64,000 bases of DNA from Perkinsus chesapeaki ATCC PRA-425. Lineage: Eukaryota > Protista > Perkinsozoa. A model generated the notes under the pieces. The model was given only the letters and a program-made list of their open reading frames with translations. It ran no database searches and was not told where the DNA came from. Shown one piece after another: positions 2,052 through 49,873 of the stretch (positions are counted from its first letter, which is position 1; every line of letters starts with the position of its first letter). The position numbers and the translations under genes are program-made. The stretch lies in contig JAAPAO010000001.1 of assembly GCA_013115145.1 (NCBI GenBank), forward strand, positions 1 to 64,000, written 5' to 3'.

Positions 2052-2764
2052 AGAGAGCAAAACCGCCAAGAATGGCGAGGCTTGTGTAAATACCAATAAG
2101 AAGAATCCTTCTAAAAAATACAATTAAGAGGTTTATTCAGAGGATAACTGTTTCTTGATAACGTTATTATGGTGTTATACTTTACCACATGAATGCACAT
2201 TAATGACGCTGCCATTGGATTGAACAGCGCATGCAGTTGACAACGTACCGCGGCGTGTGCACTGCTATCAGCCTACCTACCGCGTAGCATAAACCGTATA
2301 GGTAGGTAAGGTGAAGGCCGTGGTTAAAACTAGAAACTCAACATCTTTCACGTGATAAATTTTGATGCCTCAAAGCAATGACTAAGTCAATCCCTTCACT
2401 TGTTGTATTTTCACATGCCGATTTATAGTCTACTTGTATAGTAGACTTCTGCTATGTAATATATCATTCGACAGTAATCAAATCGTACATAATCACCAAA
2501 CATAAGACCTATGGAAGAAGTTTAAAGGGATTATACTATGCTTCTATATAGAAGATAAGAAAAATTTGCCGTTAGATTGCTGAGCTCAAGCGAGTGCCTA
2601 CATCACCTGCACAGTAATCTTATTGTGTGACAATAACCAGCGAATACAGTTTGGTGCGATGATGAGATGTTCCGCAGCGGCACGAATCGACACAACAGTA
2701 CGACTGAGAGGCCGCTGCGAAACCTCATGTATAGTTACCATCAGCGACTACATACCATCACGGA

Positions 2765-3484
2765 TTAGCACTGATTCTGTTGTTGCAGATAACCATAGTA
2801 GCAGGTTGTAGACATAGATCTGAGCTCGGGGTATGCTGCTAGTTCATCGAGGAGGTCATATAGTCTTTCTGTTAGTAGCTTATCGACCTCAACATCCTCA
2901 TCATCATTCACGTCTATGTCACGGTACTGAAGAGAATTGTGAGACGACGACGATGACTCTCTCTCGAGAGCGAAAGACATAGTATCAGATGTGGGTGGTG
3001 TTAGCGCCGCCTCAGTAGTAGAAACTCTGAGTTCAGCTTCACCATGTGCATGCCTACAATTCTCCGCCGCCCCGCACTTCCCTCTCAGCCAGAATCTACA
3101 AAGGGACGTTTTGTAGAGGTCGGGGGTGCAGCGGAGCTCTGCTCTACTATGAGCGTAGATGCAGTTTTCGCCTTTAGCACACCTACCAAGGCGATGTTGT
3201 TGACAAAGTTTGGTCTTGCGGAGATCTGGAGCATCTCTAAGCTCACTTTTACCATGGGCGTATGCACACTGTTCTCCATGCCAGCAAAGACCCTGCTGAT
3301 AGAACTTACACAATCGTATCTTAGTGAATGCAGCACGACGTGTACCAAGAGAGCTTCCAGTGCTGCATGAGACCGTACCGCCGGACGAAGTTCTATGCCT
3401 TCTACTGAGTGCTGCAGACGCACCGATACCTTGCGGTGTAGAAGTAGCGGTTACAGGGACGCCGGGAATGAGGTTTGAAGCCAT
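2765..3484 (-). CDS. Tandem CCCH zinc-finger RNA-binding protein (3 fingers)
   Basis: Three C-x7-C-x5-C-x3-H fingers, each led by a K(T/I)xLC motif (KIRLC, KTKLC, KTSLC) and followed by AHG/AHS..EL linkers. The 3' end may be spliced. Confidence 0.9.
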   Translation of the reverse strand: MASNLIPGVPVTATSTPQGIGASAALSRRHRTSSGGTVSCSTGSSLGTRRAAFTKIRLCKFYQQGLCWHGEQCAYAHGKSELRDAPDLRKTKLCQQHRLGRCAKGENCIYAHSRAELRCTPDLYKTSLCRFWLRGKCGAAENCRHAHGEAELRVSTTEAALTPPTSDTMSFALERESSSSSHNSLQYRDIDVNDDEDVEVDKLLTERLYDLLDELAAYPELRSMSTTCYYGYLQQQNQC

Positions 3485-4137
3485 AGGAGAGATACCCAGA
3501 TAAGGTGTGCGCTTTGTGCTTGCCGAGGGGAACTACAGCGCAGCGGCACCCCACCTGGGCGAGCGAGAACCGTACACATCAGAATAACCAGCTGGAACGA
3601 GTATCGAGTCTACCTTATCTCGCCATTGAGACTTAGTAGATAGAATAAACCTCCTTGAGCTGATGAGATACCAAAAAACTCGCCCGATATCAAGTTACAC
3701 TAATCATCATTTGTGCACGCGTGCGCACAGGTATCAGATCCGCATCTTAACAACACGCGAAGGCCCCTCTTGCACGTGTTGGAAAAGCCTTAAACTTCCT
3801 GAGCGTCTGATACTGTATCTTTCGTCAGGCACGCTTGCTAACAACAAACTGTGTTCCACATACACAAGTTGGTGCTCAGAGCATACGCTCGATCGTGACC
3901 GTTCTAGCGACAGGTAGGAGACAACAGAACAAACCAAAGCGTGACGCGGGTTTTTTGGGAACTTACTTGTTTCTGAATACTTTAAAGGAAGTACTGAGTG
4001 TAACTGGTGCAACGCAAAATAGAATGGGGTAACCAGATGCATCACAAATCACTGAGGACAAGTGCGCGAGGACAAGACAACAGTTGGTGGACAAAAACCG
4101 TGACAAGTTGCTTCATTGGCAGTGAATTGCAAATCTA

Positions 4138-45078: not shown

Positions 45079-46404
45079 ATGTCTCATTCTTATAACACAA
45101 ATGGGGACAGCACCGGCACAGGAGACTCCTCTCCGTCTAGTCTTCTGCAAAACACAGATCTCTACGACCTTCTACATGTAGCTCGAGACAGTGATGCTGA
45201 TGGGATCCGTCAAGGTTACTTGGAGCAGAGCAAGCTGCATCATCCGGACAAGCGGGCGTCTCAGGGAGGAGACCCGGAAGCATTTCGTCAGATCAATTAC
45301 GCCTACAGGGTACTGTCCAACCCCACTATGAGGGCTTTTTACGACAAGTACGGCCCAGAGGGTATTAGCCTCGCCGATGGTATAGTTGTAAAGCAGGATG
45401 AAACTCTTGCCAATCTGGAGCGTCGAGTTAGAGCTATGGTACGCAGCAATGAGGAGATGAAGGTGCAGAGGATGTTCCAACTGCAAGGGGAGATGACGAC
45501 CGGGCTCAAATTCCGTGACTTACACTCTGCCCCTCGATGGGCATACACGAGCTTTACCCATGGTATGGGCATCACTGCAGGGAGGCACAACTTCACCGTT
45601 GTCACCGCCAGCCATGTCCAAGCCAATGGCGGTGGTGTTGGGAAGATGACCTTCTTTTGGCAGACTGGTTGGAGCCCCTATATGCAGAGCCGAGTTATGG
45701 TGGATACAGTAGCGGGCCAGTGGTGGCCACCGGCTATCGAGGGGGTAGTTACACGTCAAGTGGGGCAGCATTCGACCCTGAGACAGACGGTTTCATGGAC
45801 CCAAGCTGGAGGGGTGGGAGCTGCTATGACTTGGGGACTTCAGCTCTTCAAGGATTGGTCTGGCAGCGTTACATTGGCCGTGGGACACGGTAATCATGCG
45901 GCATTCGAGATCGAGAAGACAAATCCCGAAATTGGCGGGGATGATGATCTGGCCAGGATGAAGGCGTGGGACAGATGCACTATGAAATACAATTTCTCAA
46001 TAGAGGGGGAGGGCAACGTTGCCTTTGAAGCGAAGGCCGTGTTGCCGTTCAGTGGCGGCTTCGAGATCTCCTGTGGCCCCACAATGTCTTTGGCCACGGG
46101 TGCCGGTATCGAGTTGAAATGTTCACAGCAGCTGAATGGCGCTGAGAGCTTGAGTGACTGGGAGGAGCTTGATGGTGCCTTCCCGACTCTAGTGCAGTGG
46201 TCACTTATGCTTCGATGGCCCAACTTCGATTCGGCTATCCTAAAGTTCCGCTTCACCCGGGGAGGAGCCGCCTTTACCCTACCGTTGGAGTTCTCTGTGC
46301 CTGGTGATAACACTGGTGTGGCCATGGCAACCAGTATCTTTTTGGCTGCCCCATTAGCAGTAAAGGTGGTGAGAGAGACAGTCCGAAGGCTCAAGAAAGA
46401 CTAG
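45079..46404 (+). CDS. DNAJC11: DNAJC11-like J-domain protein, intronless
   Basis: J domain with HPD (LHHPDK..AYRVLSNP..RAFYDKYG), a long beta-strand-rich region, then LKFRFTRGGAAFTLPLEF plus a TM helix, as in DNAJC11. Confidence 0.75.
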   Translation: MSHSYNTNGDSTGTGDSSPSSLLQNTDLYDLLHVARDSDADGIRQGYLEQSKLHHPDKRASQGGDPEAFRQINYAYRVLSNPTMRAFYDKYGPEGISLADGIVVKQDETLANLERRVRAMVRSNEEMKVQRMFQLQGEMTTGLKFRDLHSAPRWAYTSFTHGMGITAGRHNFTVVTASHVQANGGGVGKMTFFWQTGWSPYMQSRVMVDTVAGQWWPPAIEGVVTRQVGQHSTLRQTVSWTQAGGVGAAMTWGLQLFKDWSGSVTLAVGHGNHAAFEIEKTNPEIGGDDDLARMKAWDRCTMKYNFSIEGEGNVAFEAKAVLPFSGGFEISCGPTMSLATGAGIELKCSQQLNGAESLSDWEELDGAFPTLVQWSLMLRWPNFDSAILKFRFTRGGAAFTLPLEFSVPGDNTGVAMATSIFLAAPLAVKVVRETVRRLKKD

Positions 46405-46621
46405 CATTATATACCAATCAGCAGCAGTGAGACCGTCAGTAGCTGTAGTATCAATCGTTTCGTGGTAGTCATTTAAGTTGCGTTGCGAAGTCCTAGGGGA
46501 TCGCCATTCTCCTTGAGCTTTATCACACAATCGGCTGTCCCCTATGTACGAATGGGTCGGGCATACTACCTTGCCACTCGACAGTCCGCTGTTCTCAGTG
46601 GCATTTAATTGTCTATTCAAT

Positions 46622-49600
46622 ATGGAATCGACGCGCGGTGCTGGATGCATATCCTTGGCCGTGCGAACCGTGCTAGCATTGATGGTGATGCTCCTCATAG
46701 GAGTTGCTTTTGGTGAAGAAGTCTTAGACACACCCTCTGGTCGACCGATCTCTCTGGTGAAGGGTCCAGTCGACGGAACAAAATGTGAAGTTGAGGCGGT
46801 CCAGAGGGCGAACTCGGCACAGCTGCATTCGATTCTGGAGGAGCTGGCCAACACAACATACTTCCGCTTGGTGCGGGTGGCCATGGACGATGACTGTCCC
46901 TTTACGTGGGGCGACAAAAACAAGGATGAAGTCACGTGCGGATCTACTCCACCCGGAGGACCAGCTGCCGCATTTGGTTTTGGCAGCTCCCTGAGTTCGC
47001 CTGGTGGCGGCGCTTCTCTATGCAGTATCGAGCCCACTGGTAACGAGGTTAATCCTTTTATCTCTGATACAGAGTCCAGTGTGATCGAGGATGAGTTTGA
47101 TGATGATATGGATAGCGATGACGACGACGTGAGCTTGAGGCCGGATTTCTGGTTTGATATCTGCCGCCCGCCACGAGCCGGCAGCCAACTTGACTATGTG
47201 AATCTGGTCTTGAACCCCGAGCAAAACACAGGGTACAATGGCTCTCATATATGGGAGGCCATCGATGCCGAGAACTGTGTTAGCATTGGCCGGGGCCTTG
47301 GCGGTGGTTCTGGTGGGTATTGTTATGAGGAGCGGGTGCTCCAGAGACTTCTCTCTGGGATGCATGAGTCTGTCACTATACAGGTGCTGGCCAACTACTA
47401 TCCTCCCAAGAAGGGTGAAGTTGCTTGGAGACCCAACACTGATAAGTTCATGGCCACCGTCGGCAAACATCCTGAGTGGTTGAAGAATCTCAACTTTGCC
47501 TATTTGGTGATGCTCAGAGCCCTTCACAAGGCCAAACCAGTTCTCTACAACTGGGAGTACACTACAGGAGAGCCAACAGAGGACGAGAACACTTCAAAGC
47601 TGATGAAACACTTACTGGATGCTTCTGAGATGAAACTCTGTACTCCTGTTTTCGAAGGTTTTGACGAGGACAGCCTCTTTCCAGTTGACCGATCAGATAG
47701 GCGACAGTTGGCAGAGCAGTTCAAGTCTGTCTTCCAGAACGTCACCACCCTTACCAACTGTGTTCGGTGTCGTCGTTGCCGTCTCCATTCCAAGGTGACC
47801 CTGCTTGGCCTTGGTACTGGTTTGAAGATCCTGCTCACTCCGGATGTATCTCTCCTGCCATCAGCCCTCTCTCGAGATGAGATAGTTGCTTTGGTTAACA
47901 CCGTACATACTTTCTCACACAGCCTCATGGAGGTAGGGCGTCTCACTAACCTCTACCTCGAAGACCAGCGGAAACTTGTGGCCCAAGTGTCCCGTCCAGC
48001 TGCAGCCTTCAGCAACTCGGGGGCTTCGGCAATGGAACTCGCTCTATCCTACGTCGCAGAGCTCCATCTTGACCAAGCCAATGAAGATCTTCTGGTGGAC
48101 GCTATTGTGGATCGAGATGAAGCTGTTTTGTCCCTTGCTGCCAGCTTCCCGCCAGAGGCCTTCGGCCGCCATGCTCTGAGGTATCTCAAGTCCAGGCAGC
48201 GCACTGTGAAAGATACCCGCCCCCGGTACGATGCAGTTGTCGTTGGTGGTGGTCTTGCTGGCATGAGTGCGGCCATCGCCTCTGCAGATCGAGGTGCTCG
48301 GGTGCTCCTTCTGGACAAGTCGAAGCATCTTGGTGGTAACAGTGCGAAGGCGTCGAGTGGCATCAATATGAGGATGGACCAGAGCGGCGAATGCTATGAT
48401 TCCTTCCTCAGTGACACTATACGGAGCTGCGAGAGCGGCCTGGGCCCCTGCGGTCATCCAGAGCTCGCCAACGTCCTTGTGAATGACTCCTATGACGCCG
48501 TACACTGGATAGAGGACCGCTTTGGTGTACCTCTGTCAGCCCCGGTGAAGCTTGGCGGTCATTCTAGGCCGAGAACTGTGAGGCCGCCCGGGGGTCTTGT
48601 GGGAGCAGAACTCACAGCAGCTGGATCGAAGGTCATCCACAAAATGTCTAATATTGTTGTGGTCAACAACGCTAAGTTGGTCGGTTTGATAGCCGACCAC
48701 TCTGGCACTCACGAGGCCGTTCGAGGAGTTAGGTACACTGTTGGATCTGATGAGACCACTGTAGAAGTTCTCAGTGACTCGGTTGTTTTGGCTACTGGTG
48801 GGTTCGGTTATGACGTCTCGAGTGGCTCTCTGATGGCTAAGTACCGGCCCGACCTTCTGACGTTCCCTACAACTCTTGGATCTCAGACCACTGGTGACGG
48901 CATAAAGATAGCTGTGAGGGATGCCGATGCAGGCCTAAGAGACATGGACCAAGTCCAGCTCCACCCCACTGGCTTCATTGACCCCAAGGATCCAGACTCT
49001 CGGACCAAAGTCCTTGCTGCCGAGATTCTCCGAGGTGTCGGCGGCGTTATTATTGATAAGAACGGCCACCGATTCTGTGACGAGCTGGGCACGCGTAAAT
49101 ACGTGACCTCTAAGATGCTCGAAAGAGCTAATGAGACTGGCGATACCTCGAGGACCTTCAGCATCCTTATACCATATGATGCTATCAATGGTCCCGCTAA
49201 GAGGCACATTAACATGTACAAGTCCCGAGGCCTTCTACAAGAGGTGGATTACAATACCGCAGTTGAAATGGTTGGTGGTGACAGCTGGAAGGATTCAGTC
49301 GACAAATCCTCTAATGGGCGCTATTTTGTTGGTGAGGTTACCCCGGTTATCCACTACACCATGGGCGGCATCAGCATCGATACCGACGGTCATGTCCTCG
49401 ACACTCATGGAGATCTCATCGACGGCCTTTGGGCAGCTGGCGAAGTCGCTGGTGGTGTTCATGGACGTAACCGTCTGGGGGGTAATTCCCTCCTCGAGTG
49501 TGCGGTCTTCGGCAAGCGGATCGGTGACCGATTACCGGTGGAGAAGTACCATCAACCAGACGAACCTGTGGAGTCCGATCACCCGAAGCGCTCTAAGCCT

Positions 49601-49873
49601 ACTATCGACATCGCCGAGCTGGCTAAGCACGGTACGCCAAATGATTGCTGGATCGCATTGTATGGATCGGTCTACGACTTCAGCGGATACTCCACTGAGC
49701 ATCCCGGAGGATCGTCTGCTATAGAAGGCGGATGCGGCAGAGATGCGACTGAGACGTTTGAGCAGGTGCATACTGCTAACTTGGTTGAGGACATGGGCTT
49801 CGAGCCTATAGGCAACTTCTTCGCTGAAGGCAAAGTTGGCGCTGGGAACCGACACGCGGCTGATGAGTTGTGA
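46622..49873 (+). CDS. ER-resident fusion: ERO1 + soluble fumarate reductase (Osm1/Frd1/fcc3-type) + cytochrome b5; intronless
   Basis: Signal peptide; ERO1 motifs CPFTW, YVNLVLNPEQNTGY, LSGMHESV, CVRCRRCRL, LSRDEIVALVN; FRD motifs GGGLAG, GGNSAKASSGIN, LGGHSRPRT, QLHPTG, EILRGVGG, HYTMGG, NRLGGNSLLEC; b5 motifs CWIALYGSVYDF..HPGG..GRDATETFEQVH; terminal ADEL. ATG 46622 preferred to 46544. Confidence 0.93.
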   Translation: MESTRGAGCISLAVRTVLALMVMLLIGVAFGEEVLDTPSGRPISLVKGPVDGTKCEVEAVQRANSAQLHSILEELANTTYFRLVRVAMDDDCPFTWGDKNKDEVTCGSTPPGGPAAAFGFGSSLSSPGGGASLCSIEPTGNEVNPFISDTESSVIEDEFDDDMDSDDDDVSLRPDFWFDICRPPRAGSQLDYVNLVLNPEQNTGYNGSHIWEAIDAENCVSIGRGLGGGSGGYCYEERVLQRLLSGMHESVTIQVLANYYPPKKGEVAWRPNTDKFMATVGKHPEWLKNLNFAYLVMLRALHKAKPVLYNWEYTTGEPTEDENTSKLMKHLLDASEMKLCTPVFEGFDEDSLFPVDRSDRRQLAEQFKSVFQNVTTLTNCVRCRRCRLHSKVTLLGLGTGLKILLTPDVSLLPSALSRDEIVALVNTVHTFSHSLMEVGRLTNLYLEDQRKLVAQVSRPAAAFSNSGASAMELALSYVAELHLDQANEDLLVDAIVDRDEAVLSLAASFPPEAFGRHALRYLKSRQRTVKDTRPRYDAVVVGGGLAGMSAAIASADRGARVLLLDKSKHLGGNSAKASSGINMRMDQSGECYDSFLSDTIRSCESGLGPCGHPELANVLVNDSYDAVHWIEDRFGVPLSAPVKLGGHSRPRTVRPPGGLVGAELTAAGSKVIHKMSNIVVVNNAKLVGLIADHSGTHEAVRGVRYTVGSDETTVEVLSDSVVLATGGFGYDVSSGSLMAKYRPDLLTFPTTLGSQTTGDGIKIAVRDADAGLRDMDQVQLHPTGFIDPKDPDSRTKVLAAEILRGVGGVIIDKNGHRFCDELGTRKYVTSKMLERANETGDTSRTFSILIPYDAINGPAKRHINMYKSRGLLQEVDYNTAVEMVGGDSWKDSVDKSSNGRYFVGEVTPVIHYTMGGISIDTDGHVLDTHGDLIDGLWAAGEVAGGVHGRNRLGGNSLLECAVFGKRIGDRLPVEKYHQPDEPVESDHPKRSKPTIDIAELAKHGTPNDCWIALYGSVYDFSGYSTEHPGGSSAIEGGCGRDATETFEQVHTANLVEDMGFEPIGNFFAEGKVGAGNRHAADEL

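Follow-up and report, generated by a model that had tools for sequence, protein, structure and literature searches.

ERO1 reacts with O2 to give H2O2, and to our knowledge O2 is the sole established acceptor of canonical ERO1. How eukaryotes make disulfides without O2, and how they limit ERO1 peroxide, are open questions; the only proposed answer that we know of is that yeast Osm1 takes the electrons of Ero1, on the strength of weak binding and a free-flavin shuttle. In S. cerevisiae, the ER form of Osm1 hands the electrons of the Ero1 FAD on to fumarate and helps disulfides to form under anaerobic conditions (Kim et al. 2018, PMC6242907). Osm1 binds Ero1 weakly (Kd about 150-200 uM), at the site where the fumarate reductase Fcc3 has its haem domain, and it can also work via free FAD, without Ero1 contact, through a second flavin pocket; direct Ero1-Osm1 transfer is controversial according to its own authors (PMC6242907).

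We analysed a window of 64,000 nucleotides (the whole stretch of Perkinsus chesapeaki DNA under study), in which one gene joins an ERO1 domain, a fumarate reductase (FRD) and a cytochrome b5 (b5) on a single chain. Its parts are listed below; here and for residue numbers in the text the 1083-aa numbering is used, while positions of Pfam matches follow the 1109-aa numbering.

46622..49873, plus strand: whole coding sequence; continuous ORF, also in two other Perkinsus-type genomes; pN 0.12, pS 0.75
46622..46714, plus strand: predicted signal peptide, aa 1-31; sole hydrophobic stretch of the protein
46820..47932, plus strand: ERO1 domain, aa 67-437; Pfam PF04137, E 1e-77
46937..47023, plus strand: flexible outer loop with likely shuttle cysteines C106 and C134; from Cys conservation and low pLDDT
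47759..47779, plus strand: inner active site CxxCxxC (CVRCRRC; C380, C383, C386); from human ERO1a alignment
47933..48226, plus strand: helical linker module between ERO1 and FRD, aa 438-535; no Pfam family
48230..49492, plus strand: soluble FRD domain of the Osm1/Fcc3 type, aa 537-957; Pfam PF00890, E 1e-67
49493..49597, plus strand: FRD-b5 tether, aa 958-992; poorly conserved
49598..49819, plus strand: cytochrome b5 domain, aa 993-1066; Pfam PF00173, E 8e-18
49820..49870, plus strand: variable tail, ending in ADEL, an ER-retrieval-type tetrapeptide (49859-49870)

One reading frame for the whole chain

The initial annotation had described a single ORF of 1083 aa at 46622-49873 (+), and both the ORF listing, in which the frame runs uninterrupted from a first ATG at 46544 (+) through these 1083 aa to the stop, and two other Perkinsus-type genomes agree with it. 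An in-frame upstream ATG at 46544 (+) would add 26 residues, for 1109 aa in total; the Met at 46622 is also the start of the deposited P. chesapeaki model. The deposited protein is 99% identical, as an 864-aa model from which two catalytic stretches are missing. In the alignment with Osm1 and Fcc3 the segments cut are conserved and catalytic, and the model omits them wrongly. The same continuous ORF is found in two further Perkinsus-type genomes, three in total, and over its full length the Perkinsus-type orthologues have a pN of 0.12 against a pS of 0.75. Every part, linkers and domains alike, is under strong purifying selection. Given the very small E-values and the conservation of the ORF in three genomes, the ERO1-FRD-b5 architecture lies far beyond chance.

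Such a protein might be imitated by a wrongly merged gene model, a chimeric assembly or read-through from one gene into its neighbour. The deposited model at this locus does differ from the plain ORF, and the stretch is absent from two small RNA runs labelled P. chesapeaki, which is evidence neither way. However, what the deposited model lacks are conserved catalytic parts, purifying selection runs across linkers and domains, and an uninterrupted ORF recurs in all three Perkinsus-type assemblies and in an unrelated compact genome, the upstream neighbour being shared by the one Perkinsus-type assembly in which the flanks were examined; complete fused ORFs also lie on transcriptome contigs of other taxa. 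An artefact is thus extremely improbable and close to refuted, and the misassembly that the initial annotation had raised against itself is countered by the identical uninterrupted frame in the two other Perkinsus-type assemblies. Judged from sequence, ERO1, FRD and b5 genuinely share one chain, and this chain bears targeting signals of the ER type. It holds a predicted signal peptide, full ERO1, FRD, b5 and ADEL, with all motifs quoted earlier present and aligned as claimed.

Redox modules and targeting signals

The ERO1 module matches PF04137 at residues 93-463 (E 1e-77; profile positions 1-353 of 354) and aligns with human ERO1a (3ahq, E 1e-39) and yeast Ero1p (E 2e-29). Its CVRCRRC corresponds to CVGCFKC of human ERO1a (C391/C394/C397) and is invariant in all members of a family alignment of 64 fusion proteins, whose identity outside Perkinsus is 36-45%. 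The near-full profile match and the human alignment bear out the claim of a complete ERO1 domain with this motif. The FAD contacts of yeast Ero1p, which we take to be R187, T189, Y191, W200, S228, H231 and R260 (a numbering that agrees with the alignment), are largely kept: T203, Y205, W211, H248 and R299 never vary and S245 occurs in 62/64 members. At the position of R187 this protein has Q and both other Perkinsus-type proteins have H, against R in 48/64 members. Canonical ERO1 (human ERO1a, yeast Ero1p) and the Perkinsus module agree in fold, in the residues that contact FAD, in CxxCxxC and in a structural Cys at the CPF(W) motif. They differ in the outer active site, which is CX4C in canonical ERO1 but a more widely spaced Cys pair here (28 apart) and in relatives (about 10-60). 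The stretch between C106 and C134 is rich in Gly, Ser and Pro, lacks CX4C and has pLDDT <50 in the AlphaFold model; both cysteines are conserved in 97% of the 64 members, with an intervening loop that varies in length and sequence, and they are the likely shuttle pair. Since stand-alone protist ERO1s show the same two-Cys, non-CX4C pattern, the unusual outer pair is a trait of the subfamily rather than a defect of the fusion. Word-seeded searches for a separate Perkinsus ERO1, run with the domain alone and with its low-complexity-free half, returned few matches and no such protein, a weak negative.

The FRD module matches FAD_binding_2 over the entire profile (residues 563-983, E 1e-67; positions 1-414 of 414). 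It aligns with Osm1 (5glg) at E 1e-78 and 36% identity and with Fcc3 at E 2e-47, and Foldseek superposes it on Osm1 5glg with a TM of 0.84 and an rmsd of 2.7. QLHPT, EILRG, LGTRK, HYTMGG and NRLGG fall on Osm1 H281, E301/R304, R326, H435 and R477, which in turn match Fcc3 H365, E378/R381, R402, H504 and R544/545 (residue list in PMC6242907), so that the active-site His, Glu/Arg, Arg, His and Arg equivalents named in the initial annotation stand. The six catalytic residues (H781, E801, R804, R825, H911 and R951) are each invariant in 64/64. The second flavoprotein module might nevertheless reduce some other unsaturated acid, as urocanate and methacrylate reductases do, and urocanate reductase does belong to the family (E 3e-38 and TM 0.8 against the FRD module). 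Yet Osm1 and Fcc3 are by far the best matches, and all six residues that mutation has shown to be needed for fumarate reduction by Osm1 are present and invariant (PMC6242907). We consider an acid other than fumarate highly improbable, and retain fumarate as the proposed substrate.

In the membrane-bound SdhA/FrdA enzymes FAD is bound covalently by a histidine, presumably located in the alignment at the segment that reads GGNSAKASSGIN here and GGNSIKASSGIN in Osm1; there is no His in either, and the FAD of the FRD module is predicted to be non-covalent. The second flavin pocket of Osm1 comprises S78, P162, W295, F297, L298, F362 and Y363 (PMC6242907). Four of the seven equivalents are changed (P162 to V, W295 to T, F297 to V, F362 to M), with S, L and Y kept, and across the fusion family the W295 position is T/V/S and that of F297 is T/V/I, non-aromatic in nearly all members. 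The apparent loss of the pocket aromatics fits a different entry of electrons.

The Cyt-b5 match covers residues 1024-1084 (E 8e-18), and the nearest match of the domain is to the haem domain of flavocytochrome b2. Both haem-ligand histidines reported by the initial annotation were recovered: H1027 (HPGG) in 64/64 members and H1050 (FEQVH) in 63/64. In the AlphaFold model the linker forms helices at 470-528 (pLDDT about 90) between low-confidence tethers at 458-466 and 527-531. The FRD-b5 tether drops to pLDDT <50 at 980-987 and has the highest pN (0.26) among internal segments. For the whole chain pTM is 0.56, which makes the inter-domain geometry unreliable: relative placement of domains is not confident and no interface is defined. 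On this model, the three redox modules are probably joined by flexible tethers; other enzymes also carry a mobile b5-type domain on a tether.

The modules could share a chain without direct coupling, with an ordinary O2-dependent ERO1 next to an FRD-b5 that acts as a separate luminal enzyme, reoxidising free reduced flavins or luminal flavoproteins, or balancing luminal redox; fusion would then simply ensure equal amounts in the same place. The absence of a defined interface from the model would suit such an arrangement, as would the ability of yeast Osm1 to act via free FAD rather than through Ero1 contact (PMC6242907), and FRD-b5 proteins lacking ERO1 are common in fungi. Against it, the aromatics of the Osm1 free-flavin pocket are not retained, and, were there no functional link, it would be difficult to see why lineages so far apart have kept the modules together with all their catalytic residues. 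We regard mere co-localisation as unlikely and favour electron transfer between the modules.

At the N terminus, the hydrophobic core LAVRTVLALMVMLLIGVAF is followed by A-x-G before EEVL, the start of the predicted mature chain. A hydrophobicity scan of the whole protein found no other membrane-like segment, and a comparable N-terminal stretch is present in 48/58 full-length relatives. The C-terminus is ADEL here and DDEL in both other Perkinsus-type orthologues (P0001, P0003); the tail otherwise diverges among them (pN 0.53), and xDEL is kept in all three genomes, in line with the suggested resemblance to KDEL. An Amoebophrya member ends in KDEL itself. Most other members have no xDEL, the chain stopping directly after the b5 domain. 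These targeting signals suggest that the gene product is probably a soluble protein of the ER lumen.

Distribution of the fusion

The initial annotation had proposed a domain-architecture search across eukaryotes. In our homology search, about 100 of 120 listed protein clusters combine the three Pfam domains, and three further ERO1-FRD-b5 clusters, of 58, 55 and 98 members, are in the Atlas, so that more than 100 clusters have the architecture. Named hosts are Perkinsus, Effrenium, Polarella, Durusdinium, Crypthecodinium, Amoebophrya, Triparma, Bolidomonas, Epipyxis, MAST-4, Incisomonas, Prasinococcus, Diplonema and Rhynchopus. The fusion thus occurs in dinoflagellates, Amoebophrya, bolidophytes, a chrysophyte, MAST-4, a prasinophyte and diplonemids; the Atlas clusters, together with a fragment from Thalassiosira, suggest that diatoms have it too. 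Many members are complete fused ORFs on transcriptome contigs (MMETSP, Trinity), and therefore the fusion is one mRNA in these relatives. The invariance of CxxCxxC and of the FRD residues, and the near-invariance of the b5 histidines, argue from sequence that selection keeps the three activities together. In a FastTree phylogeny of the 64 members Perkinsus groups with a clade of environmental sequences and not with core dinoflagellates; being unrooted and without an outgroup, the tree yields no conclusion on origin or transfer. The hosts are mostly free-living, often photosynthetic marine protists. The fusion is therefore a broad and probably old trait rather than a Perkinsus adaptation, and the suggested link to parasitism in low-oxygen tissue was not borne out.

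Some relatives lack a module. P0070 and P0087 are ERO1-FRD proteins without b5, so the haem is not indispensable to every member. As proof of a dispensable haem they carry little weight: the counterpart of Arg545 is lost in P0087 and a motif is altered in P0070, and both may be decaying paralogues. P0122, in contrast, is ERO1-linker-b5 with no FRD at all, and it too keeps the partly conserved linker module. Such a protein is what one might expect if the b5 haem were an exit rather than a relay, with electrons passing from the ERO1 FAD, and possibly also from the second flavin, to the haem and on to an external acceptor, for example a luminal or membrane cytochrome, much as flavocytochrome b2 serves cytochrome c. 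The tethered, terminal position of the haem domain and its closeness to that of flavocytochrome b2 fit this as well. However, P0122 is a single sequence on one short contig and also misses the loop cysteines, we know of no partner, and invariant fumarate-binding and protonation residues would be pointless in a flavin that is a mere conduit. We judge an exit through the haem very unlikely; fumarate-coupled disulfide formation remains our preferred reading.

Proposed electron path and known systems

A fumarate-coupled disulfide oxidase is the most economical reading in view of the yeast Osm1 precedent (PMC6242907). By this analogy, the chain is probably a covalent, hard-wired version of the yeast Ero1-Osm1 pair that forms disulfides without O2 and without peroxide. 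The ERO1 module would oxidise PDI-type proteins through the mobile C106/C134 pair and the CxxCxxC/FAD centre. Its reduced flavin would then deliver electrons to the FAD of the FRD module within the same polypeptide, replacing or supplementing the reaction of O2 to H2O2. The most likely route would be by single electrons via the tethered b5 haem, standing in for both the haem domain of Fcc3 and the free-flavin pocket of yeast Osm1, and the final step would turn fumarate into succinate, so that disulfides would need no oxygen and make no peroxide. Potentials of b5 haems often lie above that of an FRD flavin, a point against this route; low-potential b5 domains exist. The sequences show the architecture, its conservation under purifying selection, the intact catalytic residues and the targeting signals; from these we infer which way and by what route electrons flow, what the haem does, that fumarate is supplied to the ER, and the physiological setting. 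The last could be hypoxia, darkness or simple peroxide avoidance; because most hosts are aerobic, oxygen independence is uncertain as the selective reason.

It is a tentative possibility, which we hold to be less than even, that the main disulfide-making enzyme of the ER uses fumarate, not oxygen, as a built-in terminal acceptor across a large fraction of marine protists (dinoflagellates, diatoms and other stramenopiles, diplonemids, perkinsids and some green algae). If so, secretory protein folding would be tied to the supply of a TCA-cycle metabolite and ERO1-derived peroxide would be avoided. A novel fumarate/succinate exchange (dicarboxylate transport) across the ER membrane would be implied; we know of no such transporter. 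By comparison between species, it would give independent proof of the debated passage of electrons from Ero1 to Osm1. A natural fusion, with a haem domain where bacteria have one too, argues that the partnership is real, old and conserved in every catalytic residue across several eukaryotic supergroups, and on a single chain the path becomes directly measurable. Its presence in ecologically dominant plankton and in an oyster and clam parasite would change the picture of ER redox metabolism there, and for Perkinsus an enzyme absent in this form from the animal hosts could be of practical use as a marker or as a target when its function has been established.

Our search of the open full-text literature found no description of a natural ERO1-FRD-b5 fusion, and within that literature the statement that no protein of this architecture has been characterised holds. 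Identity with kinetoplastid T. brucei FRDm2 was rejected, FRDm2 being an ApbE-type FRD (PMC8065229) and the homology search assigning the window to Perkinsus. T. brucei FRDg, FRDm1 and FRDm2 resemble the Perkinsus chain as multi-domain soluble FRDs with a fused electron-input module, but they lack ERO1; they carry an ApbE-like flavin transferase and a cytochrome b5 reductase, take electrons from NADH and are glycosomal or mitochondrial (PMC8065229). Fungal Osm1-like proteins of about 590-660 aa, in Atlas clusters named 'Osmotic growth protein' and 'fumarate reductase (NADH)', have the same FRD-then-b5 unit, without ERO1 or the helical linker. Shewanella Fcc3 is likewise a soluble FRD, with non-covalent FAD, identical catalytic residues and a haem domain on the same chain that feeds it. 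Fcc3, however, is a periplasmic enzyme that the respiratory chain supplies with electrons, and its haem domain is an N-terminal tetra-haem c domain, whereas the Perkinsus protein has a single C-terminal b5 haem and, as proposed, a thiol oxidase as the upstream donor. Yeast Ero1p and Osm1 belong to the same two enzyme families, act in the compartment predicted here, have identical FRD catalytic residues and share the proposed chemistry, from Ero1 FAD to fumarate with disulfides made without O2. They are two proteins with a free-flavin shuttle, while Perkinsus has one chain in which the pocket is not conserved and to which a b5 haem domain and a helical linker are added. What is already known is thus the yeast partnership of separate proteins; what is new is ERO1, FRD and b5 on one chain.

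Organization of the fusion gene

The gene is a single ORF without interruption (window 46544..49873, + strand), encoding 1109 aa counted from the first ATG. An alternative start at 46622, the same as that of the deposited protein of the locus, gives 1083 aa, and residue numbers below refer to this form unless the 1109-aa numbering is stated. Pfam profiles were covered fully or nearly so in the order ERO1 (E 1e-77), FAD_binding_2 (E 1e-67; the fumarate reductase module, FRD) and Cyt-b5 (E 8e-18), in agreement with the uninterrupted ERO1-FRD-b5 ORF of 1083 aa proposed in the initial annotation. Among solved structures, the top match was the yeast soluble FRD, Osm1 (5glg, E 2e-77); Shewanella flavocytochrome c3 (Fcc3) was matched at E about 1e-47, human ERO1a at E 1e-38, yeast Ero1p at E 1e-28 and, by the b5 part, the flavocytochrome b2 haem domain at E 2e-13. 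Several antisense ORFs of 100-230 aa overlap the gene across 46544-49873, one of them at 46354-47037 (- strand); they resemble the by-products that long coding regions of balanced GC content usually yield.

Features of the locus
47933-48226, + strand: conserved helical linker module between ERO1 and FRD, without a Pfam family
48731-49159 and 49271-49498, + strand: stretches cut from the deposited model P0002 (aa 730-872 and 910-985, 1109-aa numbering)
45079-46404, + strand (2386-3705 in locus L001): DnaJ protein, 441 aa, directly upstream of the fusion

The CVRCRRC motif aligned to human ERO1a CVGCFKC (C391/C394/C397), as expected from the CxxCxxC noted initially. Mutation of yeast Osm1 showed that H281, E301, R304, R326, H435 and R477 are all needed for activity, and the six have been equated with Fcc3 H365, E378, R381, R402, H504 and R544 (PMC6242907). 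The FRD motifs matched these Osm1 residues one for one, so that all six active-site assignments stood. Aligned to Osm1, the flavin-binding segment has no His at what we take to be the position of the covalent-FAD histidine of membrane-bound SdhA/FrdA, and because this residue is absent we assign the FRD to the soluble, non-covalent class. The two b5 histidines, proposed as haem ligands, are supplied by HPGG and FEQVH. A hydropathy scan of the whole chain found no internal membrane segment; the sole hydrophobic stretch is N-terminal, with A-x-G between it and the mature chain, consistent with the suggested signal peptide. The C-terminus is ADEL, and the initial sequence observation thus held in every detail. 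Apart from the CX4C form of the shuttle cysteines, the protein has the sequence and fold characters of an ERO1, and it has those of a soluble FRD and of a b5.

The closest of the listed matches were Perkinsus proteins: one P. chesapeaki protein was 99% identical, and P. olseni proteins of 1072 aa had 83% identity across 98% of the length. The deposited P. chesapeaki protein P0002 is only 864 aa long, two in-frame stretches having been handled as introns. Because these stretches contain all but one of the six FRD residues needed for catalysis, align with Osm1 and are under purifying selection (window versus L001), this model is evidently wrong and the plain ORF right. L001, from a third Perkinsus-type genome (Logan assembly), has a fusion ORF of 1064 aa without interruption, and in both loci a DnaJ-domain gene lies immediately upstream. 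In its 441-aa product the only Pfam match is the DnaJ domain, which is N-terminal, and a hydrophobic stretch lies at the C-terminal end.

When the fusion gene of the window was compared with that of L001, its synonymous sites were saturated (pS about 0.75). Non-synonymous differences were 0.08-0.15 in ERO1, linker, FRD and b5, including the pieces cut from P0002; relaxation was confined to the tether joining FRD and b5 (0.26) and to the tail at the C-terminus (0.53). Despite the relaxed tail, the three Perkinsus-type proteins end in ADEL, DDEL and DDEL; because these residues are kept though the tail diverges, the comparison points to selection on the xDEL retrieval signal itself.

Distribution of the architecture

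A whole-protein search gave 341 matches, and ERO1, FAD_binding_2 and Cyt-b5 occurred together in about 100 of the 120 listed protein clusters (35-46% identity).

Lineages with the fusion (homology search)
Dinoflagellates: Effrenium, Polarella, Durusdinium, Crypthecodinium
Syndinian: Amoebophrya
Bolidophytes: Triparma, Bolidomonas
Chrysophyte: Epipyxis
MAST-4 and Incisomonas
Green alga: Prasinococcus
Diplonemids: Diplonema, Rhynchopus

Three Atlas clusters (58, 55 and 98 members) have the same architecture, their labelled members including Chlorophyta and Bacillariophyta, and AlphaFold DB holds a Thalassiosira fragment among the relatives. That the fusion is an artefact is a rival reading of very low probability. 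Many entries are complete ORFs on MMETSP/Trinity transcripts or ~3.3-4 kb contigs, and because such ORFs occur on transcripts, relatives have the fusion as one mRNA. An ORF of 1019 aa, also without interruption, is carried by a compact genome that is unrelated. In P. chesapeaki itself, the stretch was not found in two small RNA runs, both small data sets.

Judged from these sequences, the fusion is widespread, and probably ancient, among marine protists that are mainly free-living and in many cases photosynthetic. It is no adaptation to parasitism, and the initial proposal that it suits a parasite of low-oxygen tissue fails on its hosts, most of which belong to these free-living groups. In an unrooted tree of 64 full-length members, built with no outgroup, the Perkinsus proteins were nearest to a clade of 19 environmental sequences (P0005-P0030 group) and not to core dinoflagellates. 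At least one of the 19 (locus L002) comes from a very gene-dense genome and has an intronless fusion ORF.

Conservation, putative shuttle cysteines and predicted structure

All 64 aligned members share the CxxCxxC motif, the six FRD residues and the first of the b5 histidines, and the second b5 histidine is kept in 63. The positions at which ERO1 contacts its flavin vary little or not at all, except the equivalent of yeast R187, which is Q or H in Perkinsus-type proteins. An N-terminal hydrophobic stretch is present in 48 of the 58 members that begin with Met. An xDEL terminus is confined to the proteins of Perkinsus and Amoebophrya; since yeast and human ERO1 are not known to have an xDEL-type signal either, its lack in most members is not unusual. 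At aa 166 (window 47117-47119), 60 of the 64 have Cys and the three Perkinsus-type proteins D, D and L, which may leave conserved C55 without its likely partner in Perkinsus.

The putative outer shuttle cysteines do not form CX4C. Fusion members have one Cys after a CPxW motif and a second about 10-60 residues downstream, preceding a conserved C-S-V/I-E; both are near-invariant.

46937-47023, + strand: putative shuttle-cysteine loop, low-complexity between the two cysteines and disordered in the predicted model

The same pattern is seen in ERO1s that stand alone, from haptophytes and other protists (P0123-P0125, P0130, P0132, P0135, P0136), and a single match, P0143, has CX4C. Because stand-alone proteins share it, the alignments argue for a protist ERO1 subfamily, fused or not, with a two-Cys variable loop instead of CX4C.

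In the predicted model the domains are well folded (mean pLDDT 83), the joints are low-confidence and pTM is 0.56, and an AlphaFold DB relative superposes domain by domain only, which pictures the protein as beads on flexible tethers. This picture would also suit ERO1 and FRD-b5 modules that are independent and just co-localised, a reading that we consider fairly unlikely. Variants lacking b5 or FRD are rare. P0070 and P0087 are ERO1-FRD without b5, P0087 with a damaged catalytic motif, and P0122, on one 2.2-kb metatranscriptome contig, is ERO1-linker-b5 without FRD or the loop cysteines. P0122 retains the helical linker module, and in the damaged motif of P0087, one of the b5-less ERO1-FRD variants among P0070, P0087 and P0089, the Arg545 equivalent is lost. 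The Epipyxis protein P0025 (1779 aa) has additional PALP and threonine-dehydratase-type Pfam domains and is probably a merged gene model rather than a four-module enzyme.

Proposed electron path and known systems

In yeast, ER-resident Osm1 enables Ero1 disulfide formation without oxygen, either by way of free FAD or by binding directly, though weakly, at the place that the haem domain occupies in Fcc3 (PMC6242907). In the fusion, thiol electrons would come in via the mobile ERO1 cysteine pair, be handed by CxxCxxC to the ERO1 flavin and pass to the FRD flavin and fumarate, all within one chain. The tethered b5 would swing between the flavins as a one-electron relay. The chain proposed initially, from PDI through ERO1, b5 and FRD to fumarate, is in part upheld, being the most economical reading of the intact residues and the Osm1 precedent. 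Beyond the observed architecture, residues, signals and conservation, we infer the direction and route of the electrons, their physiological role and a fumarate supply to the ER lumen.

We regard fumarate-coupled disulfide formation as somewhat more probable than not. The six conserved residues are those of Osm1 and Fcc3; that the FRD acts on another substrate is an improbable rival. Whether the haem is an obligatory intermediate between the flavins is a more tentative matter, to which we give slightly less than even chances. In the Osm1 second flavin pocket, by which the yeast enzyme oxidises free reduced flavin, four of seven residues differ in the fusion (P162 to V, W295 to T, F297 to V, F362 to M); the W295 and F297 equivalents, the two examined family-wide, are non-aromatic in nearly all 64 members. 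The relay is favoured because the fusion has not retained the pocket for free flavin and carries a haem domain on a tether; much less probably, this domain would be an exit passing electrons to an external acceptor. Since most hosts are aerobic, peroxide avoidance may matter to them as much as survival of anoxia.

Database names of these sequences are automatic ('fumarate reductase', 'flavocytochrome c', 'cytochrome b5 heme-binding domain-containing protein'). No characterised protein of this architecture was known to the initial annotation, and neither such a protein nor a description or discussion of the natural fusion was found in the open full-text literature; the Osm1-Ero1 paper does not mention natural fusions (PMC6242907). 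In kind, the chemistry has precedents, and the sequences are already public. By analogy, the fusion may be likened to the yeast Ero1-Osm1 pair overall and to Fcc3 in its reductase half. It would lend independent comparative support to the debated Ero1-Osm1 electron path, offer a single-chain system for testing the path from Ero1 to fumarate and carry a path of this type over to ecologically dominant plankton.
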